Below, one piece after another: positions 6,891 through 52,100 of a DNA stretch of 64,000 bases. The notes beneath the pieces were generated by a model. That model was not told the DNA's origin and did no database searches. It worked only from the letters and a program-made list of their open reading frames with translations. A program made the position numbers and the translations under genes. Each line of letters opens with the position of its first letter. The stretch's first letter is position 1. The DNA comes from Macrostomum hystrix (Eukaryota > Animalia > Platyhelminthes): positions 4,216,001-4,280,000 of the forward strand of contig CATNEN010000039.1 in assembly GCA_950097015.1 (NCBI GenBank), given 5' to 3'.

Positions 6891-7880
6891 CTTGCCTTGG
6901 GAATTTTTCAGCAGGTTTTCTTACTTTTAAGAATCGTCTTTCTTCTTTCGATTGGTTACTACAAACATGCCGAATACCCATAAACACTAGTATTATCTGT
7001 TTGATTCTATAGTGGTGCAGGCTGCTATGTTATTCCTGTTTTTTAGTAGATATACTTCATTTTCGTCTGAGCCAAAAATACACTTGATGCAATCTGAGCG
7101 GCCCGTAACTAGAATATTCGGGCTTGTTCTAATTCTGTTTATTAGTCTTGCTGCTTTTCCTGATTTTCGTAAATCACTAGTATAAAAATCACAATATTTT
7201 CAATTGTGTCTACTTAGTTTGTCAGTTAGTAGTGTAGTTCGTATATGGGAAGTTAAACAGTATGAACAGAAAAAAATAAAATGAGTTACATTTTCTAGAT
7301 TGGTCTCTAGCACTATTGAGTGTACATTCAGCTTACACTGGCTAGAAGCGCCTAGTCTTGAATGAATGTACATGTGAATGTGGTGTGCCTGCCCCAAGAG
7401 CCATAGTTAGCTGGCTCACCCAAACGCCATATAGGGTTGCTGTTTTAGGCAGTGTTTTATACAGCCTATGCGTCCCTATACTTCAAATTAGACTATGGAA
7501 TTGAAGAATATACAGTCTCGTGACTGCTTTTTACTTTGCGACATTGTCTCGCGACTATTCTATTGCTGCACCCAGCTTTTTCTACGCCTCCAAGATTATT
7601 TTACGCTCGCTAACTCGCTCACAAATTTGCTAGCTTTATAATTTAACTAATGCGAGCAGTTCAGGTTAGCTGGCTCACACTTTATGGTTATTGGCCTAGT
7701 TTGAGCATTTTAATTTTCAAAGTCCCATCTATGGTCAAGCTAGTGGTAAGCATGCGTGTTTGTATTGGCAAAATTTCCACACTTTCCTACTTCCCTACTT
7801 AAAAAAACTTTTATGTTATGAAGTAGTAAAATTTATCTATCTTTATAATATTTTATATTGATCTTTCATTGTCCTGTTGA

Positions 7881-9200
7881 TCTCCCATTCTCTACCCTCT
7901 CTGTCTACTTTTATACTATCCTCTGCTGTCTACTCCCATTCTCTACCCTCTCTGTCTACTTTTATACTATCCTCTGCTGTCTACTCCCACTCTCTACCCT
8001 CTCTGTCTACTTTTATACTATCCTCTGCTGTCTACTCCCATTCTCTACCCTCTCTGTCTACTTTTATACTATCCTCTGCTGTCTACTCCCACTCTCTACC
8101 CTCTCTGTCTACTTTTATACTATCCTCTGCTGTCTACTCCCATTCTCTACCCTCTCTGTCTACTTTTATACTATCATCTGCTGTCTACTCCCACTCTCTA
8201 CCCTCTCTGTCTACTTTTATACTATCCTCTGCTGTCTACTCCCATTCTATACTCAATCCTCTGCTGTCTACTCCCATTCTATACTCAATCCTCTGCTGTC
8301 TACTCCCATTCTATACTCAATCCTCTGCTGTCTACTCCCATTCTATACTCAATCCTCTGCTGTCTACTCCCATTCGATACTCAATCCTCTGCTGTCTACT
8401 CCCATTCTATACTCAATCCTCTGCTGTCTACTCCCATTCTATACTCAATCCTCTGCTGTCTACTCCCATTCTATACTCAATCCTCTGCTGTCTACTCACA
8501 TTCGATACTCAATCCTCTGCTGTCTACTTCCATTCTATACTCAATCCTCTGCTGTCTACTCACATTCGATACTCAATCCTCTGCTGTCTACTCACATTCT
8601 ATACTCAATCCTCTGCTGTCTACTCCCATTCTATACTCAATCCTCTGCTGTCTAATGCCATTCTATACTCAATCCTCTGCTATCAACTTCCATTCGATAC
8701 TCAATCCTCTGCTGTCTACTCCCATTCTATACTCAATCCTCTGCTGTCTACTCCCATTCTATACTCAATCCTCTGCTATCAACTTCCATTCGATACTCAA
8801 TCCTCTGCTGTCTACTCCCATTCTATACTCAATCCTCTGCTGTCTACTCCCATTCTATTCTCAATCCTCTGCTGTCTAATGCCATTCTATACTCAATCCT
8901 CTGCTGTCTACTCCCATTCTATACTCAATCCTCTGCTGTCTACTCCATTCTATACTCAATCCTCTGCTGTCTACTCACATTCTATACTCAATCCTCTGCT
9001 GTCTACTCCCATTCTATACTCAATCCTCTGCTGACTAATGCCATTCTATACTCAATCCTCTGCTATCAACTTCCATTCGATACTCAATCCTCTGCTGTCT
9101 ACTCCCATTCTATACTCAATCCTCTGCTGTCTACTCCCATTCTATTCTCAATCCTCTGCTGTCTACTCCCATTCTATACTCAATCCTCTGCTGTCTACTT
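7881..9200. repeat. Compound satellite: 51-bp units, then 32-bp units (ctcccattctatactcaatcctctgctgtcta)
   Basis: Periodicity read directly; the ORF translations repeat every 17 and 32 aa. Confidence 0.95.
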
Positions 9201-9303
9201 CTAACCTCTAAGCCATCTCCCCCATCTCCCTCCCAGTCTCCTTTTCGCACACTCGTATTTTCACACAGCAAATTTGCTCCGAAATCGTTACAGCCAATCA
9301 GAG

Positions 9304-10302
9304 ATGCCGCGCGTGAAGTTCTATGGCCGAATGGCGCCGCCAATTCTAACTGGCAAATTCTTCTCCGAGCTGGCCATGCAGCTGAAGGATCTGGGAGTCG
9401 GGCGCTGTTTCTATAGACTGAATCACGCGGCAAGGTACAAGGAGCCGTGCTACTGCGTCCCAAACAGAGTCGAGCCGGCCCTCGGTGACGCCTCGCGTCG
9501 TCGCTGCCGCGTCTGGGGCACGGAGATCTTCCGCGGCCGCCTGATGCCAACTACCGAGGGTGAGGATAGGCTGATCCCGGGCACTCACCTGCCCGACTGG
9601 GTGCTGGTGCCGCGCGATCAGGAGGCCGAGTTTAAATCGCGCAGCTTCGACCCGGTGCCGGTGCAGTTGATTGAATCGGTGTGCCGATTCCCGCCTGCGA
9701 TCGAGGCGCACCTGATCCGCCAGCATCCGGATCAATTCAGCGAGTTGGCTCCGCCGCTAATGTGGCTGCGGCCCAAGTGGGATCCGTACAGCTTCCAGGT
9801 GAGGCTTACACTTTGGATCGGTCGTTAGAGGGTGGGTGGCACACTGATATGCCTGACAGGCACACAGATACTGTACACAGGCATACCGTTCAACAGGCAC
9901 ACGGATGCCGTACGCAGGCACACAGATACCGTACACAGCCACACAGATACCGTACACAGGCACACAGATACCGTACACAGGCACACAGATACCGTACACA
10001 GCCACACAGATACCGTACACAGCCACACAGATACCGTACACAGGCATGCCGTACATAGAATTTGCTTGATCGCCCCGCAGGAGCCGCGAGTCCCAACGCC
10101 GGATGAGCAGGCGCGGATCTGGCCGCCCTACGCTGAGCAGCTGGAGCAGCTTGGCCCGCAGCGCAAGAAGGTGTTCAAGTCCACCTATACTCTGCCTAAA
10201 CGGGCTGACACTCCATTGCTCAACTGGAAGGTTGCGCTCAAACCGGAGCTGCCGCATGATTACAATGACGAGCCCGACTTTGAGTACAAACTGAAGGAGT
10301 AG
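9304..10302 (+). CDS. MRPS34: Mitochondrial ribosomal protein S34 (mS34); exons 9304-9798 and 10081-10302
   Basis: MPRVKFYGR...GKFFSELAMQLKDLGVGRCFYR...RYKEPCY...WGTEIFRG...PDWVLVP matches invertebrate mS34 motifs; phase-0 GT-AG intron; AATAAA near 10423. Confidence 0.88.
9855..10055. repeat. 21-bp minisatellite (cacacagataccgtacacagg) in the MRPS34 intron
   Basis: Direct tandem repeats. Confidence 0.9.
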
Positions 10303-10666
10303 AGATTCTGCAAATTTTATCCAACTGCTCAATGACTTGATGCATGCTGAGAATGAGCCGAAACAGTTAATCTGTGAAATATTCGGCACGCATTTTATTA
10401 AAAATTAGCTAGCATTGTTAGGAATAAAGAAGATTTGCAACCACTTTTGTCTAAGCCCTATTAGCTTTGTACTTGGCTTAGCCCAGAACTTGTTAGCTTA
10501 TGCGTGATTTATTTTTTATCACAGTTTTTTGTAGTTTTATTAATAATAAGAGCAGAATAATCTCCATGCTAGTTGCATATTGGGCTAAGACTAAGATTAC
10601 GCTCCAAAGTACAGGCATTGTGTAGTTATTTGTAACCACGCACAACGCACAAGTCCATTGTTTCAG

Positions 10667-13600
10667 TCCGAACCAGCTGCTGAGAGGGCTTCATTGGTGG
10701 ACCTGCAGCCAGTGAGGCGGCAGTCAGCTGTTGTTTTGTGCGTCAACCAGGAATTTCAACAGCGGGTTCTATCAATCCTGAGTGATAACAACTGCGATGT
10801 AGTTCCTGATCAGACGCCTGAAGCTGTTGAGGCAGCTGATCGAGCTGTCATGGTGGTTCCAGTCGGATTGCCTTATCAACAGACTGATCGGTACACATCG
10901 ATCGTGGCGGTAAGAGTTATTTTACCATCTTTAAGTTTGTTCGAATTTTCGCTAAATTCAAAACGATGCTTTTTTCAGAGGGCAATCGAGTGCAACAGGG
11001 GCATCCTAATCGTTGAAGAAAAAGCTCGTGCTGCAGAGCGTTTGTTTGAGAGGCTTGGAAGATGTGATTCAGTCAAGCGAGCTCTGGCTGTGAATATAGA
11101 CATGGAGTTGCAAAGTTGGCTAAAGAATGGTGAGGCTTGTCCTTCCAGTTTGATCATTTTTTATATTAGTGCAAGTTTATTGACAGAAAACTGCTGCTTC
11201 GCCCACTTCAGAGCTGCTGTTCGTTCTACCCGTTGGCGACTCCGGGGCCACCGAAAGCCAGAGGACAAATTTCGAAAAGCTGATCAGCACCCTGTTGCGT
11301 TCCGGCTACCGACTGCGCCTAAGGCAGCCTCATAAATTCGAATGGAACGAAATTTCTGACAATATGGCCGAGTGTGACAAAGTGATCACTGTTTACTTTA
11401 GGCCACCAGGAAAAATCTCAAGCCACGCTCGTGGTCACCTCTACCAGATGGCTTTCGACCGGATGATTGCTATAAGAAAAGCGATCATGTGCATTGTAAA
11501 GATGTACGCCTCATATAGTGGCAGCGATGAAGACAGTGTGCTCGAAAATCACCGAATTCTAAATTTCGTTCACACTGTTGAATCTTCCGACATATCGCAA
11601 ATGCTGGCATCTGTCAACTCATGGCTCACGGAAGAGAAAATTGCAAGAGTCAGTAAGAGCATGGTCTTTGACAGTCTTGGAAATGGGCTGGCTTGGCAGT
11701 ATGCAACTGGATTTCTAGCCTACATCTTGCCTAATATCAACAGAGTAATAAGCAGAGAAATTATCGATTCTGATGGCCTCGTTAAAGCCGATCAGCTCAG
11801 ACAATATGGTCTCCAGGATATTAATCCTAAAAATATTTTCGTACTGAAGAAGTATTTTGTTCTCCTGAAAGAGACTGACATTGACTGCGACCGGCATGTA
11901 AATCCGAATCCATCGGAACTATTTCCCAACTGTCGCAAAATTGATCGTGTACGCCCAGCAACAGACCTGAGCCAGGGTGCTAGCCTGTCTCCTGGTACTG
12001 AAAATGTTTCCGCTGTGCAAGCTGATTCACACCAGCCCACCGAGTGCGCTAATCAATGTCTACTACTGACATTTGAAAGTCCTGGGTATCCTAAGATGAT
12101 TCCGCTTTACTTAGTCGAATTGGATCAGGAAATAGTGATCTCTTCTTTGGAAGGTAAAACGGAGCGGTACACCCATGTTATTATCTTGGGCGGCTTCGCA
12201 CCTCCTGTCACTGTCATTCGCGAGCTTCGCAGACCTAAAGAGTTGGATATCACGGAAGATATGCTGCACAATGCGTACACACTCTTTAAAGAAGAATTGC
12301 AGTTTATTTTAAACCACCCGAAGGCAAATAATTTACTGGCAAAGTTTGGCTCGGTTGATGTTTCACTCGAAGCCCCTGCCAATCCTGATAAGGCGGCGTG
12401 CATCATCGAATGGAAAACAACTGGAACCGAAGAGGAATGGCACCAACTGTTTTTGTCTCGCATCAAGGAGGAGATTTTCAATGACCGATGCAACGAGCCA
12501 ATAAGATCAATTGATGAACTTGTCCACAATGACGTTTTGGTTGTTAAGTTTTCAAAATCCGTTGAAGATCTCCATGATGCTGTAGTTGAAAGGCTTGAGC
12601 GCGAAGGCTTCAGTGTGGAAAATTTTCAACTTTTAAACAAAACTTTCGCGCAAGTGCTTGTCAGGTGTCAAAGAATGGTACTATTTGCATCTCTTGAGGA
12701 TTTAGAGAATTTCCAGCGTGACTACAACAGCTACGACTTTAAGGATTCTCGCCATAACTACTTGCTTAGAGACATCACGTCTGCTGTGACCTACGTATGT
12801 TTAGTCGTCGATCGCTTTAATTTATTTTATAATATTACTTTTTTATGAATATATATATTCATACATTATATTAATATACAGTATTATTGATTTAAAGTTT
12901 TATCATTTTAACTCTCTGTATTTTAGATTCACATGCGACAAGAGTACAATCTGGTTGTTGTCGTTATCACCCAAGAAGTGCAAAAAGACATTTACAGTGT
13001 TCTACCACCGGCGCTTAAGATTCTTCCCGAAAACAATGTTGTTTCAATTGTGAACCTTAGTGCCGACAGATTAGATGACATTCAATACGCCTCTACGGAG
13101 GGAGAAACGAGACATTCTTCTTTTAGCGATCTTATTCGTCGTCTTGGTAAATAAAATTTGACGATGAATAAAAAATCACAATTGGGTAAAATAGTGGAAA
13201 CCGACGGCAATTGAAACGCTTATTCATCTCGCCTTCTATTTTGTAGACCTAAGAGAGCGCTGCATTCAGGTGGACGAAAACCTGCCACTCATGTCTATGG
13301 CCTATGCCATGGCTGCCAATTCATGCTTTGGCTTCGTGCACCACCTCGTCCAGTGTAAGTATATCTGTGTTTTCTCATGTCACTTGACTTGACTGCTGAA
13401 TAATAGAATATTTTCATTATCAATATTGAATACAGGTGAGAAGGCCGGTAATTTGCCGTTCGAGTTGCCATACAAGTACGTGGTGCCTCGCAGTGCGCGT
13501 TATCCCGACTTGAAAAAGTTGCATCACGAGCTTGGCGAGCTGGGTGTTAGCTTTAAAGAGAAGATGTTCCGCAGTGACCAACGGAATTACAGGTTCAGCT

Positions 13601-13935
13601 TGTACACACGGGTGCAAAATTCTGTGGCCACCGAAGTGGCATTCGAAGTTCCCCCGTGTGTGCTGAACCTGCGCAAGCAAGCCAAGTGCGGCCTGGGCGG
13701 CCTTCGACGCACCAAGCTGAGGCAGAACCTCAACGAGTACATAATGGCCTTCCAGACGATGTTGGCTTGCATGAACTGGCAGCACTACGTTAAGGTATTG
13801 GACTGGGCGGACGATAAGTTTCAACCCGATGCGTGGCGCGATCCGACACGCGAGTACGCAGAGAGCCTCCTAAACTTGATCTTCTCTAATGAAGGAAATA
13901 TGCACACCAGTTCTTCTGATCTAGGCCTGGCTTAG
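10667..13935 (+). CDS. Gene A: TIR-TIR-STING-TIR-STING protein, about 930 aa (exons 10667-10909, 10979-11129, 11212-12794, 12927-13146, 13247-13354, 13436-13935); start codon not located
   Basis: Exons join in phase. STING-1: GNGLAWQYATGFLAYILPNI (human STING [20 protein letters not shown]), KKYFVLL, GGFAPPVTVIREL, TLFKEELQFIL. STING-2: AYAMAANSCFGF, YVVPRSARYPD, DQRNYRFSLY, VAFEVPPCVLNL. Three alpha/beta TIR-like segments; these are less certain than the STING calls. Confidence 0.8.
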
Positions 13936-20220: not shown

Positions 20221-20888
20221 CATTCTGACCCATGCTTTCAAGATTAAGTAAATCAGAAAATCAGATTTAATGATCTAGTTCATTTTATTTACGAACAAAG
20301 TTTTTTGTTCAGTTTCTGTTGCTCGTATACCGTCCGAGAAGTGAATTCTATCGATAATGAAAGGCAGGGTAGTTGAAGAACTCGGTCGTGCAGTATTCGA
20401 AGTACAAGGTTCTTTGCTCCTGAATACTCATGCAGTTCGCGGAATATTTCAGTCGCTAATATTGCCGTTATTCTTAGTAGATAATGGCTTAATGGTTGAT
20501 TGGTGCAACAAAATTATTGGTGCAGGCCAAATGTCTATGGCCCACGGCGCAACCACCCCCAGCCGAAACACGCACCAATGGCAAAGTGACAGCGACAGCG
20601 ATTGGCCAGTTCAATCTAGACTTAGAAGTTTTTCAAACGTCTTTGACAAATACTGGATCGATAACAATCTCTTCCAACCCGTTCCTTTAATACAGGAGCT
20701 AATAACGGAAGCTGCAGATCTGTGCCTTGGACAAACACGCTCGAAATGTGTAAAAAGTACACACTCAACACAATTGTGATTTGACAACCGGCTTGACAAC
20801 TCGCTTTAACTATGAATTTATACTACTACGATATGTACATATGTAATGTTTACAATACAAGCATTTTTACGTTTTTAGTATTTTGTGG

Positions 20889-23800
20889 CTGAGAATGGCA
20901 GACTGAGAATGGTAGACTGAGAATTGTAGACTGAGAATGGTAGACTGAGAATAGTAGACTGAGAATGGTAGACTGAGAATAGTAGACTGAGAATAGTAGA
21001 CTGAGAATAGTAGACTGAGAATGGTAGACTGAGAACGGAAGACTGAGAATTGTAGACTGAGAATTGTAGACTGAGAATAGTAGTCTGAGAATAGTAGACT
21101 GAGAATGGTAGACTGAGAACGGAAGACTGAGAATTGTAGACTGAGAATTGTAGACTGAGAATGGTAGACTGATAATGGTAGACTGAGAATGGTAGACTGA
21201 GAATAGTAGACTGAGAATGGTAGACTGAGAATAGTAGACTGAGAATGGTAGACTGAGAATGGTAGACTGAGAATGGTAGACTGAGAATTGTAGACTGAGA
21301 ATAGTAGACTGAGAATGGTAGACTGAGAATAGTAGACTGAGAATGGTAGACTGAGAATAGTAGACTGAGAATGGTAGACTGAGAATGGTAGACTGAGAAA
21401 AGTAGACTGAGAATGGTAGACTGAGAATGGTAGACTGAGAATGGTAGACTAAGAATAGTAGACTGAGAATGGTAGACTGAGAATGGTAGACTGAGAATGG
21501 TAGACTGAGAATAGTAGACTGAGAATGGTAGACTGAGAATAGTAGACTGAGAATAGTAGACTGAGAATGGTAGACTGAGAATGGTAGACTGAGAATGGTA
21601 GACTGAGAATGGTAGACTGAGAATGGTAGACTGAGAATGGTAGACTGAGAACGGAAGCCTGAGAATTGTAGACTGAGAATTGTAGACTGAGAATTGTAGT
21701 CTGAGAATAGTAGACTGAGAATGGTAGACTGAGAACGGAAGACTGAGAATTGTAGACTGAGAATTGTAGACTGAGAATGGTAGACTGATAATGGTAGACT
21801 GAGAATGGTAGACTGAGAATGGTAGACTGAGAATGGTAGACTGAGAATGGTAGACTGAGAATGGTAGACTGAGAATGGTAGACTGAGAATTGTAGAATGA
21901 GAATAGTAGACTGAGAATAGTAGACTGAGAATAGTAGACTGAGAATGGTAGACTGAGAACGGAAGACTGAGAATTGTAGACGGAGAATTGTAGACTGAGA
22001 ATAGTAGTCTGAGAATGGTAGACTGAGAATGGTAGACTGAGAATGGTAGACTCAGAATGGTAGACTGAGAATAGTAGACTGAGAATGGTAGACTGAGAAT
22101 GGTAGACTGAGAATGGTAGACTGAGAATGGTAGACTGATAATGGTAGACTGAGAATGGTAGACTGAGAATAGTAGACTGAGAATGGTAGACTGAGAATAG
22201 TAGACTGAGAATGGTAGACTGAGAATGGTAGACTGAGAATGGTAGACTGAGAATAGTAGACTGAGAATGGTAGACTGAGAATGGTAGACTGAGAATGGTA
22301 GACTGAGAATGGTAGACTGAGAATGGTAGACTGAGAATGGTAGACTGAGAATTGTAGACTGAGAATTGTAGACTGAGAATAGTAGTCTGAGAATAGTAGA
22401 CTGAGAATGGTAGACTGAGAATGGTAGACTGAGAATAGTAGACTGAGAATGGTAGGCTGAGAATAGTAGACTGAGAATAGTAGACTGAGAATGGTAGACT
22501 GAGAATAGAAGACTGAGAATGGTAGACTGAGAATGGTAGACTGAGAATTGTAGACTGAGAATAGTAGACTGAGAATGGTAGACTGAGAATAGTAGACTGA
22601 GAATAGTAGACTGAGAATAGTAGACTGAGAACGGTAGACTGAGAATAGTAGACTGAGAATGGTAGACTGATAATGGTAGACTGAGAATGGTAGACTGAGA
22701 ATAGTAGACTGAGAATGGTAGACTGAGAATGGTAGACTGAGAATAGTAGACTGAGAATAGTAGACTGAGAATGGTAGACTGAGAACGGAAGACTGAGAAT
22801 TGTAGACTGAGAATTGTAGACTGAGAATAGTAGTCTGAGAATAGTAGACTGAGAATGGTAGACTGAGAACGGAAGACTGAGAATTGTAGACTGAGACTTG
22901 TAGACTGAGAACGGTAGACTGAGAATAGTAGACTGAGAATGGTAGACTGATAATGGTAGACTGAGAATGGTAGACTGAGAATAGTAGACTGAGAATGGTA
23001 GACTGAGAATGGTAGACTGAGAATAGTAGACTGAGAATAGTAGACTGAGAATGGTAGACTGAGAACGGAAGACTGAGAATTGTAGACTGAGAATTGTAGA
23101 CTGAGAATAGTAGTCTGAGAATAGTAGACTGAGAATGGTAGACTGAGAACGGAAGACTGAGAATTGTAGACTGAGACTTGTAGACTGAGAATGGTAGACT
23201 GATAATGGTAGACTGAGAATGGTAGACTGAGAATAGTAGACTGAGAATGGTAGACTGAGAATAGTAGACTGAGAATGGTAGACTGAGAATGGTAGACTGA
23301 GAATGGTAGACTGAGAATAGTAGACTGAGAATGGTAGACTGAGAATGGTAGACTGAGAATGGTAGACTGAGAATAGTAGACTGAGAATGGTAGACTGAGA
23401 ATGGTAGACTGAGAATGGTAGACTGAGAATAGTAGACTGTTCTCAGTCTGAGAATGGTAGAAAAGTAGACTGAGAATGGTAGACTGAGAATAGTAGACTG
23501 AGAATGGTAGACTGAGAATAGTAGACTGAGAATAGTAGACTGAGAATAGTAGACTGAGAATGGTAGACTGAGAACGGTAGACTGAGACTTGTAGACTGAG
23601 AATGGTAGACTGATAATGGTAGACTGAGAATGGTAGACTGAGAATAGTAGACTGAGAATGGTAGACTGAGAATAGTAGACTGAGAATGGTAGACTGAGAA
23701 TGGTAGACTGAGAATGGTAGACTGAGAATAGTAGACTGAGAATGGTAGACTGAGAATGGTAGACTGAGAATGGTAGACTGAGAATAGTAGACTGAGAATG

Positions 23801-26800
23801 GTAGACTGAGAATAGTAGACTGAGAATGGTAGACTGAGAATAGTAGACTGTTCTCAGTCTGAGAATGGTAGAAAAGTAGACTGAGAATGGTAGACTGAGA
23901 ATAGTAGACTGAGAATGGTAGACTGAGAATAGTAGACTGAGAATAGTAGACTGAGAATAGTAGACTGAGAATGGTAGACTGAGAACGGAAGACTGAGAAT
24001 TGTAGACTGAGAATTGTAGACTGAGAATAGTAGTCTGAGAATAGTAGACTGAGAATGGTAGACTGAGAACGGAAGACTGAGAATTGTAGACTGAGACTTG
24101 TAGACTGAGAATGGTAGACTGATAATGGTAGACTGAGAATGGTAGACTGAGAATAGTAGACTGAGAATGGTAGACTGAGAATAGTAGACTGAGAATGGTA
24201 GACTGAGAATGGTAGACTGAGAATGGTAGACTGAGAATGGTAGACTGAGAATAGTAGACTGAGAATGGTAGACTGAGAATGGTAGACTGAGAATGGTAGA
24301 CTGAGAATAGTAGACTGAGAATGGTAGACTGAGAATAGTAGACTGAGAATGGTAGACTGAGAATAGTAGACTGAGAAAAGTAGACTGAGAATGGTAGACT
24401 GAGAATGGTAGACTGAGAATAGTAGACTGAGAAAAGTAGACTGAGAATGGTAGACTGAGAATGGTAGACTGAGAATGGTAGACTGAGAATAGTAGACTGA
24501 GAATGGTAGACTGAGAATGGTAGACTGAGAATGGTAGACTGAGAATAGTAGACTGAGAATGGTAGACTGAGAATAGTAGACTGAGAATGGTAGACTGAGA
24601 ATAGTAGACTGTTCTCAGTCTGAGAATGGTAGAAAAGTAGACTGAGAATGGTAGACTGAGAATAGTAGACTGAGAATGGTAGACTGAGAATAGTAGACTG
24701 AGAATAGTAGACTGAGAATAGTAGACTGAGAATGGTAGACTGAGAACGGAAGACTGAGAATTGTAGACTGAGAATTGTAGACTGAGAATAGTAGTCTGAG
24801 AATAGTAGACTGAGAATGGTAGACTGAGAACGGAAGACTGAGAATTGTAGACTGAGACTTGTAGACTGAGAATGGTAGACTGATAATGGTAGACTGAGAA
24901 TGGTAGACTGAGAATAGTAGACTGAGAATGGTAGACTGAGAATAGTAGACTGAGAATGGTAGACTGAGAATGGTAGACTGAGAATGGTAGACTGAGAATA
25001 GTAGACTGAGAATGGTAGACTGAGAATGGTAGACTGAGAATGGTAGACTGAGAATAGTAGACTGAGAACGGTAGACTGAGAATAGTAGACTGAGAATGGT
25101 AGACTGATAATGGTAGACTGAGAATGGTAGACTGAGAATAGTAGACTGAGAATGGTAGACTGAGAATGGTAGACTGAGAATAGTAGACTGAGAATAGTAG
25201 ACTGAGAATGGTAGACTGAGAACGGAAGACTGAGAATTGTAGACTGAGAATTGTAGACTGAGAATAGTAGTCTGAGAATAGTAGACTGAGAATGGTAGAC
25301 TGAGAACGGAAGACTGAGAATTGTAGACTGAGACTTGTAGACTGAGAATGGTAGACTGATAATGGTAGACTGAGAATGGTAGACTGAGAATAGTAGACTG
25401 AGAATGGTAGACTGAGAATAGTAGACTGAGAATGGTAGACTGAGAATGGTAGACTGAGAATGGTAGACTGAGAATAGTAGACTGAGAATGGTAGACTGAG
25501 AATGGTAGACTGAGAATGGTAGACTGAGAATAGTAGACTGAGAAAAGTAGACTGAGAATGGTAGACTGAGAATGGTAGACTGAGAATGGTAGACTGAGAA
25601 TAGTAGACTGAGAAAAGTGGACTGAGAATGGTAGACTGAGAATGGTAGACTGAGAATTGTAGACTGAGAATAGTAGACTGAGAATGGTAGACTGAGAATA
25701 GTAGACTGAGAATGGTAGACTGAGAATGGTAGACTGAGAATGGTAGACTGAGAATGGTAGACTGAGAATGGTAGACTGAGAATGGTAGACTGAGAATGGT
25801 AGACTGAGAATGGTAGACTGAGAATAGTAGACTGAGAAAAGTAGACTGAGAATGGTAGACTGAGAATGGTAGACTGAGAATGGTAGACTAAGAATAGTAG
25901 ACTGAGAATGGTAGACTGAGAATGGTAGACTGAGAATGGTAGACTGAGAATAGTAGACTGAGAATGGTAGACTGAGAATAGTAGACTGAGAATAGTAGAC
26001 TGAGAATGGTAGACTGAGAATGGTAGACTGAGAATGGTAGACTGAGAATGGTAGACTGAGAATGGTAGACTGAGAATGGTAGACTGAGAACGGAAGCCTG
26101 AGAATTGTAGACTGAGAATTGTAGACTGAGAATTGTAGTCTGAGAATAGTAGACTGAGAATGGTAGACTGAGAACGGAAGACTGAGAATTGTAGACTGAG
26201 AATTGTAGACTGAGAATGGTAGACTGATAATGGTAGACTGAGAATGGTAGACTGAGAATGGTAGACTGAGAATGGTAGACTGAGAATGGTAGACTGAGAA
26301 TGGTAGACTGAGAATGGTAGACTGAGAATTGTAGAATGAGAATAGTAGACTGAGAATAGTAGACTGAGAATAGTAGACTGAGAATGGTAGACTGAGAACG
26401 GAAGACTGAGAATTGTAGACGGAGAATTGTAGACTGAGAATAGTAGTCTGAGAATGGTAGACTGAGAATGGTAGACTGAGAATGGTAGACTCAGAATGGT
26501 AGACTGAGAATAGTAGACTGAGAATGGTAGACTGAGAATGGTAGACTGAGAATGGTAGACTGAGAATGGTAGACTGATAATGGTAGACTGAGAATGGTAG
26601 ACTGAGAATAGTAGACTGAGAATGGTAGACTGAGAATAGTAGACTGAGAATGGTAGACTGAGAATGGTAGACTGAGAATGGTAGACTGAGAATAGTAGAC
26701 TGAGAATGGTAGACTGAGAATGGTAGACTGAGAATGGTAGACTGAGAATGGTAGACTGAGAATGGTAGACTGAGAATGGTAGACTGAGAATTGTAGACTG

Positions 26801-29800
26801 AGAATTGTAGACTGAGAATAGTAGTCTGAGAATAGTAGACTGAGAATGGTAGACTGAGAATGGTAGACTGAGAATAGTAGACTGAGAATGGTAGGCTGAG
26901 AATAGTAGACTGAGAATAGTAGACTGAGAATGGTAGACTGAGAATAGAAGACTGAGAATGGTAGACTGAGAATGGTAGACTGAGAATTGTAGACTGAGAA
27001 TAGTAGACTGAGAATGGTAGACTGAGAATAGTAGACTGAGAATAGTAGACTGAGAATAGTAGACTGAGAACGGTAGACTGAGAATAGTAGACTGAGAATG
27101 GTAGACTGATAATGGTAGACTGAGAATGGTAGACTGAGAATGGTAGACTGAGAATGGTAGACTGAGAATGGTAGACTGAGAATAGTAGACTGAGAATAGT
27201 AGACTGAGAATGGTAGACTGAGAACGGAAGACTGAGAATTGTAGACTGAGAATTGTAGACTGAGAATAGTAGTCTGAGAATAGTAGACTGAGAATGGTAG
27301 ACTGAGAACGGAAGACTGAGAATTGTAGACTGAGACTTGTAGACTGAGAACGGTAGACTGAGAATAGTAGACTGAGAATGGTAGACTGATAATGGTAGAC
27401 TGAGAATGGTAGACTGAGAATAGTAGACTGAGAATGGTAGACTGAGAATGGTAGACTGAGAATAGTAGACTGAGAATAGTAGACTGAGAATGGTAGACTG
27501 AGAACGGAAGACTGAGAATTGTAGACTGAGAATTGTAGACTGAGAATAGTAGTCTGAGAATAGTAGACTGAGAATGGTAGACTGAGAACGGAAGACTGAG
27601 AATTGTAGACTGAGACTTGTAGACTGAGAATGGTAGACTGATAATGGTAGACTGAGAATGGTAGACTGAGAATAGTAGACTGAGAATGGTAGACTGAGAA
27701 TAGTAGACTGAGAATGGTAGACTGAGAATGGTAGACTGAGAATGGTAGACTGAGAATAGTAGACTGAGAATGGTAGACTGAGAATGGTAGACTGAGAATG
27801 GTAGACTGAGAATAGTAGACTGAGAATGGTAGACTGAGAATAGTAGACTGAGAATGGTAGACTGAGAATAGTAGACTGTTCTCAGTCTGAGAATGGTAGA
27901 AAAGTAGACTGAGAATGGTAGACTGAGAATAGTAGACTGAGAATGGTAGACTGAGAATAGTAGACTGAGAATAGTAGACTGAGAATAGTAGACTGAGAAT
28001 GGTAGACTGAGAACGGTAGACTGAGACTTGTAGACTGAGAATGGTAGACTGATAATGGTAGACTGAGAATGGTAGACTGAGAATAGTAGACTGAGAATGG
28101 TAGACTGAGAATAGTAGACTGAGAATGGTAGACTGAGAATGGTAGACTGAGAATGGTAGACTGAGAATAGTAGACTGAGAATGGTAGACTGAGAATGGTA
28201 GACTGAGAATGGTAGACTGAGAATAGTAGACTGAGAATGGTAGACTGAGAATAGTAGACTGAGAATGGTAGACTGAGAATAGTAGACTGTTCTCAGTCTG
28301 AGAATGGTAGAAAAGTAGACTGAGAATGGTAGACTGAGAATAGTAGACTGAGAATGGTAGACTGAGAATAGTAGACTGAGAATAGTAGACTGAGAATAGT
28401 AGACTGAGAATGGTAGACTGAGAACGGAAGACTGAGAATTGTAGACTGAGAATTGTAGACTGAGAATAGTAGTCTGAGAATAGTAGACTGAGAATGGTAG
28501 ACTGAGAACGGAAGACTGAGAATTGTAGACTGAGACTTGTAGACTGAGAATGGTAGACTGAGAATGGTAGACTGAGAATAGTAGACTGAGAATGGTAGAC
28601 TGAGAATAGTAGACTGAGAATGGTAGACTGAGAATGGTAGACTGAGAATGGTAGACTGAGAATAGTAGACTGAGAATGGTAGACTGAGAATGGTAGACTG
28701 AGAATGGTAGACTGAGAATAGTAGACTGAGAATGGTAGACTGAGAATAGTAGACTGAGAATGGTAGACTGAGAATAGTAGACTGTTCTCAGTCTGAGAAT
28801 GGTAGAAAAGTAGACTGAGAATGGTAGACTGAGAATAGTAGACTGAGAATGGTAGACTGAGAATAGTAGACTGAGAATAGTAGACTGAGAATAGTAGACT
28901 GAGAATGGTAGACTGAGAACGGAAGACTGAGAATTGTAGACTGAGAATTGTAGACTGAGAATAGTAGTCTGAGAATAGTAGACTGAGAATGGTAGACTGA
29001 GAACGGAAGACTGAGAATTGTAGACTGAGACTTGTAGACTGAGAATGGTAGACTGATAATGGTAGACTGAGAATGGTAGACTGAGAATAGTAGACTGAGA
29101 ATGGTAGACTGAGAATAGTAGACTGAGAATAGTAGACTGAGAATGGTAGACTGAGAATGGTAGACTGAGAATGGTAGACTGAGAATAGTAGACTGAGAAT
29201 GGTAGACTGAGAATAGTAGACTGAGAATGGTAGACTGAGAATAGTAGACTGAGAAAAGTAGACTGAGAATGGTAGACTGAGAATGGTAGACTGAGAATAG
29301 TAGACTGAGAAAAGTAGACTGAGAATGGTAGACTGAGAATGGTAGACTGAGAATGGTAGACTGAGAATAGTAGACTGAGAATGGTAGACTGAGAATGGTA
29401 GACTGAGAATGGTAGACTGAGAATAGTAGACTGAGAATGGTAGACTGAGAATAGTAGACTGAGAATGGTAGACTGAGAATAGTAGACTGTTCTCAGTCTG
29501 AGAATGGTAGAAAAGTAGACTGAGAATGGTAGACTGAGAATAGTAGACTGAGAATGGTAGACTGAGAATAGTAGACTGAGAATAGTAGACTGAGAATAGT
29601 AGACTGAGAATGGTAGACTGAGAACGGAAGACTGAGAATTGTAGACTGAGAATTGTAGACTGAGAATAGTAGTCTGAGAATAGTAGACTGAGAATGGTAG
29701 ACTGAGAACGGAAGACTGAGAATTGTAGACTGAGACTTGTAGACTGAGAATAGTAGACTGATAATGGTAGACTGAGAATGGTAGACTGAGAATAGTAGAC

Positions 29801-30650
29801 TGAGAATGGTAGACTGAGAATAGTAGACTGAGAATGGTAGACTGAGAATGGTAGACTGAGAATGGTAGACTGAGAATAGTAGACTGAGAATGGTAGACTG
29901 AGAATGGTAGACTGAGAATGGTAGACTGAGAATAGTAGACTGAGAATGGTAGACTGAGAATAGTAGACTGAGAATGGTAGACTGAGAATAGTAGACTGAG
30001 AAAAGTAGACTGAGAATGGTAGACTGAGAATGGTAGACTGAGAATAGTAGACTGAGAAAAGTAGACTGAGAATGGTAGACTGAGAATGGTAGACTGAGAA
30101 TGGTAGACTGAGAATAGTAGACTGAGAATGGCAGACTGAGAATAGTAGACTGAGAACGGTAGACTGAGAATAGTAGACTGAGAATGGTAGACTGAGAATA
30201 GTAGACTGAGAATAGTAGACTGAGAATAGTAGACTGAGAATGGTAGACTGAGAACGGAAGACTGAGAATTGTAGACTGAGAATTGTAGACTGAGAATAGT
30301 AGTCTGAGAATAGTAGACTGAGAATGGTAGACTGAGAACGGAAGACTGAGAATTGTAGACTGAGACTTGTAGACTGAGAATGGTAGACTGATAATGGTAG
30401 ACTGAGAATGGTAGACTGAGAATAGTAGACTGAGAATGGTAGACTGAGAATAGTAGACTGAGAATGGTAGACTGAGAATGGTAGACTGAGAATGGCAGAC
30501 TGAGAATGGTAGACTGAGAATGGCAGACTGAGAATAGTAGACTGAGAATGGTAGACTGAGAATGGCAGACTGATAATGGTAGACTGAGAATGGTAGACTG
30601 AGAATAGTAGACTGAGAAGTCTACTATTCTCAGTACCATTATCAGTAGAC
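20889..30650. repeat. 9.7-kb satellite of 14-bp units (gactgagaatRgta) with higher-order repeats
   Basis: Roughly 690 units with recurring variant units and inverted units. Confidence 0.98.
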
Positions 30651-32372: not shown

Positions 32373-34379
32373 ATGCTTCTCGTGATTATCATTGGAGCCA
32401 TCAGTCAAGGAATTTGGCCTTGGGAACGATTGCGCAAAATTCTGGACGAGGTATTCGATGAAGTCTCAATCGTAAATACCGGCCAGGGCGTTGACTTTGG
32501 CGAACTGAAGCAGCAGATAGCAGCCTGCGATGCCATCTTAGTGCTCGAAAATGAGGCACCCAAAGCAGTATTGCCAAAAGATGTACTCAGCACACTTCAA
32601 GGGTTGATTGTGACAAAGGTGAGTTTTTTACTATGTATTTTACAATGAGCGCGGCCAAGAATCATAATCAGCTAATCCAGTCTGTCAGACATAGATAAAA
32701 AATTTATGGCAACATTATGGCAACGAAAATGTATTTCAGTGCTTCGAAAATCGAAAGCGAGTCGCACACATACTGAAAAATAACATCGAAGATCAAGTCG
32801 GTACGAGCTGGATAAAAAGCAACCGAGCAAGGAAGGTTTTTTGGTTCTACTACTTGAAAACGACTCCTGAAGATGCATTGATGCCTCAGTTAGAGAAAAA
32901 TAAATCTGGTAAAGGTCTTACCTGTCCTAAAATATTCCAGCATGTTTGTTTTCATCTTTTTATAAAAACAGCGCAGTAAAAGGCCTTCCACAAACTTGCT
33001 TTTCAGTGAAAAAATTTAGCAGTCCAGGAGAGAGCTTCGCGTGGCAGCTTGCCGCTGGGTTTCTGTCCTACATTCTGCCTAATTTGAGAGGCCATATTCG
33101 GGCTTCACTCTTCGACCAAAGCGGCTGCATCAGACAAGATTTGCTGACCGAGTTCAGAGTCACGGGCATTGACCCGACCAGAATTCTCGTCGTTCCGAGG
33201 TTCCTGCTGGTGCTCGATGAGCGCATTGTGCTCGGTCAGCAGTCGGTGTCCAGCATGTGTCCGCAACACCTGTTTCCCGGCTGCTCAAAGATCTGCAGCG
33301 CATCCACTGAGCTGAGCCTCGAGTTCGACAGTCCTGGATACAAGAAGCGAGTGCCAGCATACCTGATGCAGCTCGAGCAGCCCCTCACAAAGGGTCAGTC
33401 GACATTCACACACGCTGTGATCTTCGGCGGCTATGCTGCACCGATGTTCGTCATGCAGAAGCTGAGCATGAGCGATGAAGAGAAGAAGCAGATGTTTGAG
33501 CAGTTCAGAGATGAGCTCAGCTTCATTCAGCATCACCCGAGAGCGAATGCGATTCTGAGAGAGCTCAGCGACTGCAGCTCAGATGGCGTCAGCGAGTCGG
33601 AGCCGAGTGCACTTCACGTGATCGACATGAAGGAGGAAGACTCGCTGAGGTCTTCCATCGTTGCTAGCATTGAGGACTTTCTGCTTTTTGATGACTGGAC
33701 TCTCGTTTCAGAAAATGAGAATGGTTCAAGCCTAACAACACCTGGAGACGAGGTTCCATTTATGTCCATGGCTTTTGCGATGGCTGCGAACGTGTGGTTT
33801 GGATTTGCTCAGCTTGTCAGTGATTGTAAGTTCATATTGTGGCTTTATAATTGTTGATTGCTTTCTTCTTATCAGCAGACAGCCTTTATCATTCGGAGCC
33901 AAACTCACTTTATTGTAGACCTTTCGCAACTATCCACTGATGGGGAGCAGATGCCGTTCGACCTGCCGTACTTCTTCGTGATCCCGAGGAGCGGTCGCTT
34001 CCCTGACGAGTCGAAGCTGCTCAGCCGGTTCGCCGAGGTCGGAGCTCAATCGAGTGTGCAGGAGTTTCGAGCAGCCAGCGGCAGACGCTACAGCTTCCGA
34101 GTGCACGAGTGGAGGTCGCGCACGATCGCATTCGAGATTCCGCCGTGTGTGCTCGGGCTTCGAAGGCAGGCGGAGTGCGGCGTCGGTGGAATCGACGCAG
34201 GAGACCTGCCGACTCACCTTGCCGAGTTCCGAGACGCTCTCAGCAAGCTCGCTGCAGACGGTGGAGACCGATTCCGGGTGGTCGAGTGGGATGACGTCAC
34301 TGGCTTTGAAGAATTATCATGCATAGATAATAAATTTGCAGTGAATCTTCTTGACTTTTTGGATTTCAAATGCTACTGA
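32373..34379 (+). CDS. Gene B: TIR-STING-STING protein, 564 aa (exons 32373-32618, 32740-32908, 33007-33825, 33919-34379)
   Basis: Exons sum to 1695 nt in frame. TIR-like N-terminus (LLVIII...ELKQQIAACDAILVLE); STING-1 GESFAWQLAAGFLSYILPNL...GYKKRV...GGYAAP...EQFRDELSFI; STING-2 AFAMAANVWFGF...FVIPRSGRFPD...GRRYSF...AFEIPPCVLGL. Confidence 0.82.
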
Positions 34380-36788: not shown

Positions 36789-38785
36789 ATGTCCGAAAGA
36801 GTTATGAACGTCGATTTGTTAGCCATCGGTTCGGCGGGAGAAGCAGCGATTCACACAATGGAATTCATTGAGCTTTCCATGAAGGAGTTCGACCTGAATA
36901 TTATTGAACTATCACCAAGCAGCCTAGTCAACATAGAAGAATGCGAGCTACTCAGGGAGTTGCTGCCAACAAGCGACTGTGCAGTTGTCCTTCTACTCAA
37001 CGAGCCAGTACAAGAACCAATGCGGCTGAGACTATTAGCATATCTGCATGAAGTAGCCATCAGAATAGTAAGTTTTATACAATATATCTATTGCAACAGC
37101 TTTTATACACAAATTTGACATCACACAATCTTCTCTAAAACAACAGTGCCCAAATAAGCGAAGACCTGGACTTCATGTAATAAAAAACTTCACTTGCAAC
37201 GCCAAAGTCGGAAAAATCTTCCAAATTGATGAGCAACAGCGGCAGTGTTTTCACTTCTGGGATTTCAAAATAACACCAGTGGAAGAATTCGCTGGGCATT
37301 TACGAACATCAATACAAAGTATGTTTGAATTTCATATACTTGTACCTTTCAGTGTGCCCTTTTTTCCGACAACGATTGACTATTTTACTGGTAAAAACGA
37401 TACTTTTAGAAGTTAGAAGTCCCAGCACTCATGGAGAGAGCTTCGCGTGGCAGCTTGCAGCTGGGTTTCTGTCCTACATTCTGCCTAATTTGAGAGGCCA
37501 GATTCGGGCTTCACTCTTCGACCAAAGCGGCTGCATCAGACAAGATTTGCTGACCGAGTTCAGAGTCACGGGCATTGACCCGACCAGAATTCTCGTCGTT
37601 CCGAGGTTCCTGCTGGTGCTCGATGAGCGCATTGTGCTCGGTCAGCAGTCGGTGTCCAGCATGTGTCCGCAACACCTGTTTCCCGGCTGCTCAAAGATCT
37701 GCAGCGCATCCACTGAGCTGAGCCTCGAGTTCGACAGTCCTGGATACAAGAAGCGAGTGCCAGCATACCTGATGCAGCTCGAGCAGCCCCTCACAAAGGG
37801 TCAGTCGACATTCACACACGCTGTGATCTTCGGCGGCTATGCTGCACCGATGTTCGTCATGCAGAAGCTGAGCATGAGCGATGAAGAGAAGAAGCAGATG
37901 TTTGAGCAGTTCAGAGATGAGCTCAGCTTCATTCAGCATCACCCGAGAGCGAATGCGATTCTGAGAGAGCTCAGCGACTGCAGCTCAGATGGCGTCAGCG
38001 AGTCGGAGCCGAGTGCACTTCACGTGATCGACATGAAGGAGGAAGACTCGCTGAGGTCTTCCATCGTTGCTAGCATTGAGGACTTTCTGCTTTTTGATGA
38101 CTGGAGCTTGGTTTCAGGTGTCATAGAGCAGTTGTGCGAGCTGTCATTCGATTTTCCTGTCAAGTCGACGGCCTTTGCCTTGGCTGCGAACGTGTGGTTT
38201 GGATTTGCTCAGCTTGTCAGTGATTGTAAGTTCATATTGTGGCTTTTTAATTGTTAATTGCTTTCTTCTTATCAGCAGACAGCCTTTATCATTCGGAGCC
38301 AAACTCACTTTATTGTAGACCTTTCGCAACTATCCACTGATGGGGAGCAGATGCCGTTCGACCTGCCGTACTTCTTCGTGATCCCGAGGAGCGGTCGCTT
38401 CCCTGACGAGTCGAAGCTGCTCAGCCGGTTCGCCGAGGTCGGAGCTCAGTCGAGTGTGCAGGAGTTTCGAGCAGCCAGCGGCAGACGCTACAGCTTCCGA
38501 GTGCACGAGTGGAGGTCGCGCAGGATCGCATTCGAGATTCCGCCGTGTGTGCTCGGGCTTCGAAGGCAGGCGGAGTGCGGCGTCGGTGGAATCGACGCAG
38601 GAGACCTGCCGACTCACCTTGCCGAGCTCCGAGACGCTCTCAGCAAGCTCGCTGCAGACGGTGGAGACCGATTCCGGGTGGTCGAGTGGGATGACGTCAC
38701 TGGCTTTGAACAGCTTCTGTGGACTGATCCGACTAGTGGTTACTGTTTGAGTCTATTGGACTTTTTGGAAACCCGTTTTTTCTGA
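36789..38785 (+). CDS. Gene C: TIR-STING-STING protein, 577 aa (exons 36789-37067, 37147-37318, 37410-38225, 38319-38785)
   Basis: Exons sum to 1734 nt in frame; intron phases match gene B. STING cores are nearly identical to gene B; the TIR-like N-terminus is divergent (VDLLAIG...ELLPTSDCAVVLLL...YLHEVAIR). Confidence 0.82.
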
Positions 38786-49184: not shown

Positions 49185-52100
49185 ATGTCTGGAGGCCAGC
49201 AGCTTTCAAGCCTGCGTGACGGCATCAAATCCGGTCTGATCGATGTGCCGATGGGCAGTGCCCTGCTGCTAGACGGAGTCGCCTCGCAGCCGCCTGATCA
49301 AACCGAGAGCCGGCGCGACCTCCTGGCCATTATTGAACTGCGACGGAAGACTCGCCAGATTCAGGTTAGTCCTTGACCAATCAGGATTTAAGACGCCAGG
49401 ACGACTAGCTGTGGACCAATCAGTATCAGTTAGGGTTCGGGTTGAGTGCAGCTGTGGACCAATACAGTATCAGTTAGGGTTCGGGTTGAGTGCAGCTGTG
49501 GACCAATCAGTATCAGTTAGGGTTCGGGTTGAGTGCAGACCGGGGGAGTGTAACTGGATGTCTTCTACCACCAACATTTTTAAAGGTGTCAACCGACGAT
49601 CGGGAAGTTCGCGCCTACCTGCGCCAGCTGGGCGAGCCGATCTGCCTATTCGGCGAAGATGCCGCCGATCGTCGCGAGCGTCTGAAGACTCTGATTGTGC
49701 TGCACGGCGAGTCAGCGATACGGAAACGCCCCGACGGATCTTCGGATGCCGCTGCTGCTGGCTCGGATGCCGGCACTCCGGCGTCGTCCACTGCCGCTGG
49801 CGGGCAGGCAATCAACAAGGAGCTGTGGTATCACGAGGGACCAGAAGCTCTGCAGGTGTGTTGCCTTTGTTGGCCCGGCTGGCTTGTAATCCCGATATCG
49901 GTCTTTAGCACAATTTAGTTTTCCAATAGAATTTCCTCCTCAGTGCCTACTATGAGTACACGATCTGAGTTAAAGATGCGCGCTGGTAAAAAAAAATCGT
50001 AGGCCTAGCCAGAAACTTACGAAGCCTTTTTAGGGTGGTTGCTAATCAGTCGGAGTTGCTATGAGAGTCCTGTTTTATTTGTTGAGTTATTACATCAAAA
50101 TTCTTTTTCTAAATGACATCATTACCACAAATGGCCTTCAATAGAAGTATGTCAGTTTGAGGTGTGCGCCTCGTTTGTATTGCATCATGCCAGATGAGTA
50201 TCGAGCGTGGCAAAGTATTAAGTGATTTAGATGATTATCAGTTTCTTCAGCTGAGTATCCGGTCCTTCAGCTGAGTATCCGGTCCTTCAGCTGAGTATCC
50301 GGTCCTTCAGCTGAGTATCCGGTCCTTCAGCTGAGTATCCGGTCCTTCAGCTGAGTATCCGGTCCTTCAGCTGAGTATCAAGTCCTTCAGCTGAGTAAGT
50401 ATCCGGTCCTTCAGCTGAGTATCCGGTCCTTCAGCTGAGTATCCGGTCCTTCAGCTGAGTATCAGGTCCTTCAGCTGAGTATCCGGTCCTTCAGCTGAGT
50501 ATCCGGTCCTTCAGCTGAGTATCGGTCCTTCAGCTGAGTATCCGGTCCTTCAGCTGAGTATCAAGTCCTTCAGCTGAGTATCAAGTCCTTCAGCTGAGTA
50601 AGTATCCGGTCCTTCAGCTGAGTATCCGGTCCTTCAGCTGAGTATCCGGTCCTTCAGCTGAGTATCCGGTCCTTCAGCTGAGTATCCGGTCCTTCAGCTG
50701 AGTATCAGGTCCATTGTGAGTATCAGGTCCATTGTGAGTATCAGGTCCATTGTGAGTATCAGGTCCATTGTGAGTATCAGGTCCATTGTGAGTATCAGGT
50801 CCATTGTGAGCATCAGGTGCAGTAAGAGTATCAAGTCCAATTAGAGTGTCAGGTCCATTAAAGTGTAACCATTAAGTTTTTTTACAGCTCAGCATCATTA
50901 TACTTCCAGGCTCTAGTGAGTGTGCGCTGGCTCGTTTGTCAATCTTCAGACGTCTCTGATAATTCACTAGGCTGTATACTCAATTGCGAATTTTGGGTTT
51001 CGAGTCTTGTCTTCACGTCTAATTGACATCCTCATTCTAGTCAATTTTACTTAGCTTTAGCTGTAATTTCAAAAGCTAATTGACTAGGCTGATGCTTCCG
51101 GATTCAGCAGTTTTATTGGCTTTTAAGCGTGAGACTGAGTCTATATATTTGCGGCTCCATTATCTCCAAGTCTACTGCCGAACTCAACCAATGGCTCACT
51201 GGCGAAGCCTGGTCTGTTTGGCGATCTGCTTTCGCCAAGTCTTAACTATTAACGGCACTGGCTGCATCTCTCTGACGCCAGCGAAGTGGTGCGTAAGATT
51301 TCGAGCTTCTGCTGTAAACTTCTGCGATGCGATGCGCATCTGTCACGCTCTCGGCGAGGAGATGATCTCAGCCTGAACCAAATAACATTTACACTGCCTG
51401 ATAACGGCCTGCTTTACTACTGGATAGGCCTGACTGATGCGCTTGTAGAGCGAGGCAAAAACAAGGACGGCTGGTTGTGGATTAAAGACGGCAATAAGAC
51501 TTCTGTTAATAGTACCTTGTTCGAACCTAGTGAGCCTGATGATCGGTATAACGAAGACTGCGTTGCAGCTTCAATTAAGCAAAGAGGTCTTGTAGATATT
51601 TCCTGCGCTAAAGCCTACACAATGATTGCCACACTCTGCTATACAGATTCCAACGTCTCTGTGCTACCTAAGCCAGTGACACCGGGATCCTTTGTGGCCT
51701 ACAACCTTGACCGGATTAACACTGTGACTCAGCCTGACACTGGCTGCTGGTTTGAAGCCTCGTCTCCATCAATTACAGATCGTTTCCAATGCTTGATTAG
51801 TTGCGCCAATTTCAGCTACGACTGCGTCGGATTCTTGTGGCACCCGGTCGCGCTGACTTGCATTCAGCTGCGCTACTTTGACGCCGCTGTCAACCTGACA
51901 AATGCCGATGGCAGCTGGGAGAAGTACTTGAGATCGGCTGCCAACTGATGGACACTGATGCATTAGACACGCGAAAACATTTCCGAGAGTAAATCTGCGT
52001 ATTTGAAACTGGAAAGATAAATACGGGAACAAATTTGTTATCTAATGGACAATTTCCCCGTAATGCTAAAAACAAGCCAGAAGGTCTGTTTACTTCTCTG

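Follow-up and report, generated by a model that had tools for sequence, protein, structure and literature searches.

Results

The window analysed here is a 64,000-nucleotide stretch of the genome of the flatworm Macrostomum hystrix (assembly GCA_950097015.1, contig CATNEN010000039.1, positions 4,216,001 to 4,280,000 of the forward strand). It carries three paralogous intron-containing genes, all on the + strand, which we call A (10666-13935), B (~32373-34379) and C (~36789-38785), and each encodes on one chain two unlike domains, STING-1 and STING-2, that are predicted to have the ligand-binding fold of STING. Gene A consists of six exons (10666-10908, 10978-11128, 11211-12794, 12927-13145, 13246-13354 and 13436-13935), the last of which ends in the stop codon and is followed by the 3' untranslated region. 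The gene is transcribed and spliced, since the five GT..AG joints were present in RNA contigs (four runs of one study), and the spliced open reading frame (ORF) comprises 873 residues if translation starts at the first internal Met and about 934 if it starts at a leader ATG. In two of the runs a 24-nt leader (CTGCGAAGACTCAATTTATTGCAT), ending in ...TTGCAT and absent from the window, was joined at 10666 and supplied the AT of the ATG; in the remaining two runs the gene A contig ran on unspliced upstream of 10666. The joined leader looks like the product of spliced-leader trans-splicing that provides the start codon, and it resembles what we take to be the Macrostomum spliced leader. Two blocks of tandem repeats, whose translated units are of the HSLPSLSTFILSSAVYS type and the HRYRTQ type, lie directly upstream of gene A at 7858-10100.

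STING-1 of gene A lies at 11670-12482, as placed with the AlphaFold2 (AF2) model, Foldseek, VIA-align and hhalign. Its helix a1 (GNGLAWQYATGFLAYILP, 11679-11732) and its lid, GYPKMIPLY (12084-12110), were read from the sequence; the segment HVIILGGFAPP (12174-12206), in which G corresponds to E260 and P to T263 of human STING, was mapped with hhalign; and the last strand and last helix lie at 12393-12413 and 12438-12482. Just ahead of the lid strand, alignment and AF2 place an insertion of about 34 residues (11952-12053) that is shared with the Macrostomum lignano protein P0003, is absent from the other 11 paralogues, and is predicted to be disordered (predicted local distance difference test score, pLDDT, below 50 at residues 95-128). 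A middle domain, possibly TIR-like, follows at 12534-13145 and spans the intron at 12795-12926. STING-2 begins with a first helix (MSMAYAMAANSCFGFVHHLVQ; MSMAYAMAAN...; 13291-13354) that has its own exon, ending in phase 1, and the joint 13354/13436 to its body was found in RNA contigs. The body (13436-13932) contains R-N-Y at 13582-13590, FEVPP at 13642-13656 and the last helix at 13855-13884.

The features of genes B and C were read from the sequence with predicted splice sites. In gene B one exon (32946-33825, predicted donor GATT/GTAAGT) carries STING-1, with helix a1 at 33027-33080, the lid GYKKRVPAY at 33336-33362 and HAVIFGGYAAP at 33411-33443, followed by a short linker that leads into the STING-2 first helix (33762-33824). 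After a predicted intron (33826-33918) comes the STING-2 body (33919-34379), with GRRY at 34080-34091 and FEIPP at 34131-34145. Gene C is built alike: its exon at 37325-38225 holds STING-1 (helix a1 37433-37486, lid 37742-37768, motif of the E260/T263 region 37817-37849) and the first helix of STING-2 (38162-38224), and the body at 38319-38785, with GRRY at 38480-38491 and FEIPP at 38531-38545, follows a predicted intron (38226-38318). Both predicted introns are 93 nt long and in phase 1, and the predicted junction of B (...LVSD-Y-LSQL...) agrees with the annotated M. lignano protein P0001 (...PLSDYMQQL...). The middle domain, which A and most other paralogues have, is missing from B and C (33444-33761 and 37850-38161), so that about 15-20 residues within one exon join the last helix of STING-1 to the first helix of STING-2; the linker of P0001 is likewise short. 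The motifs in A, B (33027-34145) and C (37433-38545) lie exactly where they had been located in a preliminary description of this DNA, which had proposed from the letters alone that the two halves differ at ligand-contact positions and form an asymmetric pocket.

Both halves were compared with STING by structure and by profile. The reference alignments A1 (STING-1) and A2 (STING-2) held one exon of each type from 12 genome loci, the genome searches covered the 220-Mb assembly, and AF2 folding was done exon by exon, with STING-2 modelled without its first helix. The STING-1 model of gene A (pLDDT 67) matched STING in Foldseek at E 1.6e-4, the top 50 matches all being STING, and VIA-align laid 149 of its residues on human 153-307 with Z 9.4. 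For the last exon of gene A, which holds the STING-2 body, the model (pLDDT 77) gave a Foldseek E of 2e-6, with every listed match being STING, and a VIA-align Z of 11.5 over 134 residues. Residue 1 of this model fell at about human residue 173, which places the intron at the kink of helix a1 and the first half of the helix on the preceding exon.

At the sequence level, the STING-1 profile found STING chains among PDB sequences at E 9e-5, chiefly via helix a1, and the HMMER profile of the STING-2 last exon found no STING match there; the latter needed the first helix and profile-profile comparison to reach STING. In such comparisons with hhalign, canonical STING (reference P0008, whose alignments with anemone and human STING have E values of 1e-38 to 1e-32) was matched by STING-1 with a probability of 99% and E 1e-17, and by STING-2 with its first helix with a probability of 93% and E 4e-8 over 162 columns. 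The Pfam model STING_LBD (PF15009) matched A at E 0.039 across 25 residues and had no match in P0001 or P0002; no Pfam-grade STING was found in the genome, where the top STING_LBD score was 25.6 bits versus a cut-off of 27. A 517-residue ORF of A returned nothing at E<=1e-3 in a protein homology search, and the relatives described below came from an exhaustive profile search. STING-1 and STING-2 are linked to each other only via canonical STING and via the fold. The models and profile comparisons show that both halves of the family have the predicted STING ligand-binding fold.

The preliminary description had read STING-2, by eye, as keeping R238-x-Y240 and E260, with T263 replaced by Pro and AMAAN in the place of GLAWS in a degenerate first helix. 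All of this held in the hhalign mapping, which placed R-N-Y on R238-x-Y240, the E of FEVPP on E260, its second P on T263, AMAAN on GLAWS and G-F on G166-Y167. The first helix of STING-2 is truncated and degenerate. Among the 12 paralogues in A2 only 10 columns are invariant, and the lid R and Y are among them; R-x-Y is invariant among paralogues, with F replacing Y once in M. lignano. The Glu equivalent to E260 is missing from just one of the 12 paralogues and is present in all three M. lignano proteins, P0001-P0003. By a rough estimate, the chance of the three named contact positions falling in those conservation classes is <1e-3. Phe occupies the Y167 position in all 11 STING-2 first helices that were recovered (8 of the 12 paralogues and three orthologues).

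STING-1 keeps the canonical G-x-A-W...G-F helix, including the Trp, and 6 of the 20 invariant columns of A1 lie inside the 18-residue helix a1. With high column confidence, hhalign placed G175 on E260, P178 (A in B and C) on T263, and G-F on G166-Y167, in agreement with the earlier reading that this half retains the helix and has E260 replaced by Gly and T263 by Pro (in A) or Ala (in B and C). Phe at the Y167 position is found in STING-1 of 12/12 paralogues and 3/3 orthologues, and its proposed presence in both halves was thus confirmed by hhalign and by the paralogue alignments. The lid is indeed shortened, as had been described, the stretch from the G234-like Gly to the Y245-like Tyr having 3 residues fewer than in canonical STING. 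In all 12 paralogues it has a conserved K/R and two Tyr; an LFPxC motif in and around it is invariant, and so are His motifs of this half.

We placed the STING-1 lid on human numbering by five automated alignments, and the register shifted with the method. With all paralogues, HMMER and hhalign put the first invariant Tyr (that of G-Y) at Y240 and a Pro at R238, and MAFFT with all domains inserted 2 residues and aligned M/R with R238 and the second invariant Tyr with Y240. With clade II only (defined below), MAFFT aligned the conserved K/R with R238 and V/I/M with Y240, and hhalign put the residue past the conserved K/R at R238 and deleted three residues, including Y240. The substitution of Y240 by Pro that had been proposed for STING-1 requires a register that none of the five alignments produced, and it was not confirmed. 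A lid register taken from the symmetry of AF2 hairpins was also tried and rejected as unreliable, since the hairpins of real STINGs differ in length by up to 9 residues. R-x-Y occurs in no register of STING-1 in A, B or C, and at the position first assigned to R238 the residue varies (M, R, Q, Y or T). In clade II the originally assigned lid positions read K-V-F, near R-V-Y, and change together with D/S versus G/A at E260/T263; this pattern indirectly lends that register some support.

At each of the 12 genome loci of the family, STING-1 and STING-2 are represented by one exon apiece. The exhaustive profile search recovered the full-length M. lignano proteins P0001 (B/C-like), P0002 and P0003 (A-like), of which P0003 and P0001 are encoded on one 454-kb M. 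lignano contig; one M. lignano relative is already labelled STING in UniProt. The same search returned tandem-STING proteins of a scallop (P0009), Capitella teleta (P0007), an octocoral (P0004, a partial record) and a metagenome (P0005), as well as the single canonical STINGs P0006, P0008 and P0010. In a domain tree all STING-1 domains fell in one clade and all STING-2 domains in another, each with support of 100/100 and on long stems (2.3 and 2.6 substitutions per site). The pairs A-P0003, B-P0001 and D-P0002 recurred in both halves of the tree; the halves therefore differed before the family expanded and have stayed together ever since. Each of the two, STING-1 and STING-2, is an old lineage conserved in its own right, and within them divergence is considerable: A and B are 36% identical in each half, and paralogue identities are about 26-39%.

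The paralogues divide into two clades. Clade I contains A, B, C, the gene at 19.16 Mb of contig C39, the gene on contig C38 and M. lignano P0001-P0003; in its STING-1 the positions S162, E260 and T263 are occupied by Q, G and A/P. Clade II consists of an array on contig C2 and a gene on contig C7, with N, D and S at these three STING-1 positions. STING-2 is similar in both, with N at S162, F at Y167, and R, Y and E at the contact positions, T263 being P, T, G or A. Strong asymmetry is thus a feature of clade I, and the asymmetry of clade II is milder. The preliminary description had stated that the split holds between distant paralogues; this is correct, and the split is seen in A, B, C, two more paralogues and the three M. 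lignano orthologues, with the caveat that STING-1 of the C2 array and the C7 gene has D/S. Because the residue asymmetry is kept across paralogues and species, in separate lineages, the halves have been under different constraints for a long time. This part of the earlier interpretation is supported by the conserved asymmetry and the 100/100 lineages, whereas its other option, that one half had become a scaffold, is weakened by the K/R, the two Tyr and LFPxC of STING-1.

In member L024 of the C2 array (G000:C2:9059352-9062678) STING-2 has Met for the conserved Glu and Asp for the helix Gly (G166), and L024 is possibly a decaying copy. At 8.967 Mb of the same contig (L014/L015), STING-1 is divided between two frames.

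No transmembrane-like segment was found in A, whose maximum 19-residue hydropathy (KD19) was 1.28 versus 1.87 in the control P0008. The M. lignano orthologues reached 1.15-1.49, and by this measure neither A nor the orthologues have the N-terminal four-helix membrane domain of transmembrane STING. To a protein language model, the N-terminal and between-halves regions are TIR-like (0.77-0.86), which we treat as a lead; likewise as a lead, the part of P0003 orthologous to the middle domain of A had TIR_2/SEFIR clusters as look-alikes (0.76-0.77). Pfam gave no match on the TIR-like regions of the family, and in scallop P0009 it identified TIR_2 (363-475) at the position matching the middle domain of A. 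The predicted family architecture is therefore soluble and reads (TIR-like)-STING-1-(TIR-like; missing in B and C)-STING-2, where the two STING folds and the solubility come from the models and hydropathy and the TIR part is a lead.

A candidate source of a nucleotide messenger was sought in the same genome. Pfam Mab-21_C had 131 matches, about 100 of them above the cut-off and mostly in open frames of about 400-600 residues; examples lie at C1:12.72-12.82 Mb and at C39:3939417-3948277, about 270 kb upstream of the window. Judged by these domain matches, the set is a very large expansion of the cGAS/MiD51 superfamily, with N-terminal cores too diverged for PF03281. Three members that we inspected had no domain besides Mab-21_C, and a search of the genome for the SMODS domain found nothing.

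Discussion

The STING pockets studied so far are two-fold symmetric and are formed by two identical chains, and the main animal ligand, 2'3'-cGAMP, is itself asymmetric. If the proteins described here are natural single-chain receptors with unlike halves, they would show the outcome of lifting the symmetry constraint on STING, and such a receptor would be a ready-made scaffold for asymmetric ligand recognition. According to published reports, cGAS and STING are missing from planarians (PMC13563047), and most flatworms have no cGAS-like receptors, cGLRs (PMC9980059). Nevertheless, in the early-branching flatworm studied here about 12 double-STING genes are expressed or intact and the Mab-21_C family is very large, in a phylum believed to have largely lost the pathway.

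Several known systems resemble these proteins in part. The canonical STING homodimer of human, anemone and coral (e.g. 4KSY, 5CFQ, 8GJZ) has the fold of each flatworm half, and its stacking aromatic, lid Arg/Tyr and Glu are those of STING-2. However, it is membrane-anchored, with one domain per chain and a two-fold symmetric pocket made by identical chains, whereas the flatworm proteins have no membrane segment and two unlike domains per chain, and STING-2 lacks the second half of helix a1, its model starting at about human 173. Bacterial and oyster TIR-STING effectors share with them a soluble STING joined to a TIR-type module and, likely, the logic of ligand-driven assembly; they differ in having a single STING domain, forming homodimers and carrying a proven TIR. 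Two STING domains per chain have already been listed for oysters (PMC11103948), and the lid Arg and lid aromatic (R238, Y240) have been termed universal in STING (PMC9980059). We found no paper discussing unequal pocket residues in tandem-STING proteins, within an incomplete coverage of the literature.

Among the tandem proteins, scallop P0009 is like gene A in being soluble and in having two STING domains with a TIR between them, in equal module order. Unlike those of the flatworm, both of its halves pass Pfam and are near-symmetric, each having the G-x-A-W helix, the Arg, Phe at Y240 and the Glu; the flatworm halves are far more diverged, their losses are complementary and their TIR-like modules are unseen by Pfam. 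Capitella teleta P0007 (ELT98160) also has two STING domains, about 20 residues apart, and its first domain has a degenerate helix of the AMAA type with G-F, as STING-2 does (G-Y-A-M-A-A...F-G-F versus A-Y-A-M-A-A-N...F-G-F). This first domain has Gly/Ala at E260/T263 and the second is fully canonical, so that the degenerate helix and the lost Glu are in one domain, whereas in the flatworm the losses are divided and the AMAA-type domain is the second. No single protein matched the flatworm STING-2 profile better than P0007 (probability 68%, E 5e-5), and the AMAA-type domains of the two grouped in the domain tree with weak support (63/89). This hints at an AMAA-type STING lineage older than the split between flatworms and annelids, though the domain order is reversed.

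We suggest, as the most parsimonious reading, that the A, B and C family, about 12 genes, encodes double-STING proteins whose halves pair within the chain around one lopsided nucleotide pocket, a proposal that in our judgement is evenly balanced between right and wrong. In this mechanism STING-1 and STING-2 of a single chain would pair in the way that two protomers do in a STING dimer. Only the STING-2 side would give the canonical base and phosphate contacts, and the STING-1 side would contribute the helix-a1 floor together with the Lys/Arg and Tyr residues conserved in that half. When a nucleotide messenger binds, the lid would close and the TIR-like modules would be driven to assemble. Such a messenger could be endogenous, with the large Mab-21_C gene family as its possible source, or could be a cyclic dinucleotide of bacterial origin. 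A more specific version, which we put forward tentatively and think rather unlikely, is a half-site pocket in which STING-2 would read one nucleotide with Arg/Tyr/Glu and STING-1 the other with K/R and two Tyr, the messenger being an asymmetric or non-canonical one from the Mab-21_C genes and the two clades reading different messengers.

That there is one asymmetric pocket would depend on the two halves pairing within one chain. Each of the 12 paralogues and 3 orthologues has exactly one half of each type, and the halves co-diverge; the short linker of B and C (~15-20 residues) would hold the halves at high local concentration. These features point, indirectly, to in-chain pairing. A complex prediction with residues 150-392 and 398-582 of P0001 and 2'3'-cGAMP gave an ipSAE of 0.00 in two runs with a poorly folded partner, and counts neither way.

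A number of observations weigh against the proposal. STING-1 of clade II keeps Asp/Ser and K-V-F, so the loss on the STING-1 side is not family-wide, and with its own conserved lid residues STING-1 may bind something alone. Neither half reached the Pfam gathering score of 27 bits (13.8 for the A ORF, 18.5 for P0003), and the STING-1 and STING-2 profiles showed no significant mutual similarity in hhalign. As to the messenger, the nearest solved relatives of the Mab-21_C member L030 were MiD51 and, weakly, a cGLR, and in this one member we saw by eye no acidic pair at what we take to be the canonical catalytic motif of cGAS.

Of the three rival explanations we rank homotypic pairing as the likeliest, followed by a STING-1 that is passive and then by a loss of ligand binding. 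Homotypic pairing, 1-1 and 2-2 across chains, would give symmetric pockets and possibly chains or filaments, the 2-2 pocket being a near-canonical cyclic-dinucleotide site and the 1-1 pocket different or empty. We consider this unlikely, though it deserves serious attention: STING-2 alone holds all the universal contacts (F167, R238, Y240, E260), enough for a complete symmetric 2-2 pocket, STING-1 has kept the canonical dimer helix including its Trp, and in A and most paralogues a whole domain separates the halves, which are not forced together. Filament formation is known for TIR-STING proteins (PMC9402430). Homotypic pairing is harder to reconcile with B, C and P0001, in which so few residues join the halves, and with the strict presence of one co-diverging half of each type, which is expected if the halves need each other. 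If instead STING-1 of A, B and C were a non-binding scaffold, a pseudo-receptor half lending its helix to a partner while STING-2 alone touches the ligand, the G and P/A at E260 and T263 and the variable residue at the position first assigned to R238 would be accounted for. Yet STING-1 has retained the Phe at the base-stacking position, its lid K/R and two invariant Tyr, and LFPxC and His motifs invariant across 12 paralogues, clade II has retained D/S, and this degree of conservation exceeds the needs of a passive partner, all of which makes a mere scaffold improbable.

Still less probable, in our view, is that the STING folds are now modules for protein interaction or assembly and no longer nucleotide receptors, in a flatworm lineage from which cGAS-type signalling was lost. 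The sole PF03281 match in the genome is presumably a developmental gene of the MAB21L type, the genome search for SMODS gave no match, both halves are under the Pfam threshold, and cGAS and STING are missing from Schmidtea (PMC13563047). Nevertheless, the Phe of both halves and the STING-2 residues Arg, Tyr and Glu are fixed despite 26-38% overall identity, a pattern not easily accounted for unless a ligand is bound; the genome has >100 Mab-21_C ORFs, and for bacterial cyclic dinucleotides a host synthase would be unnecessary.

Other features of the window

Between genes A and B, at 20763-30650, a 14-nt unit is repeated head to tail about 684 times (~9.6 kb), with a strong strand skew (GC skew ~0.6). 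This microsatellite dominated the output of a repeat search over 10-40 kb, and a 1382-residue ORF at 26491-30639 on the - strand was rejected as an artefact of the repeat. By domain matches, an ORF of a Tc1/mariner-type transposase (DDE_3 and HTH_Tnp_Tc3_2) lies at 23-1057 on the - strand, and an ORF with a C-type lectin domain lies at 51286-51948 on the + strand.

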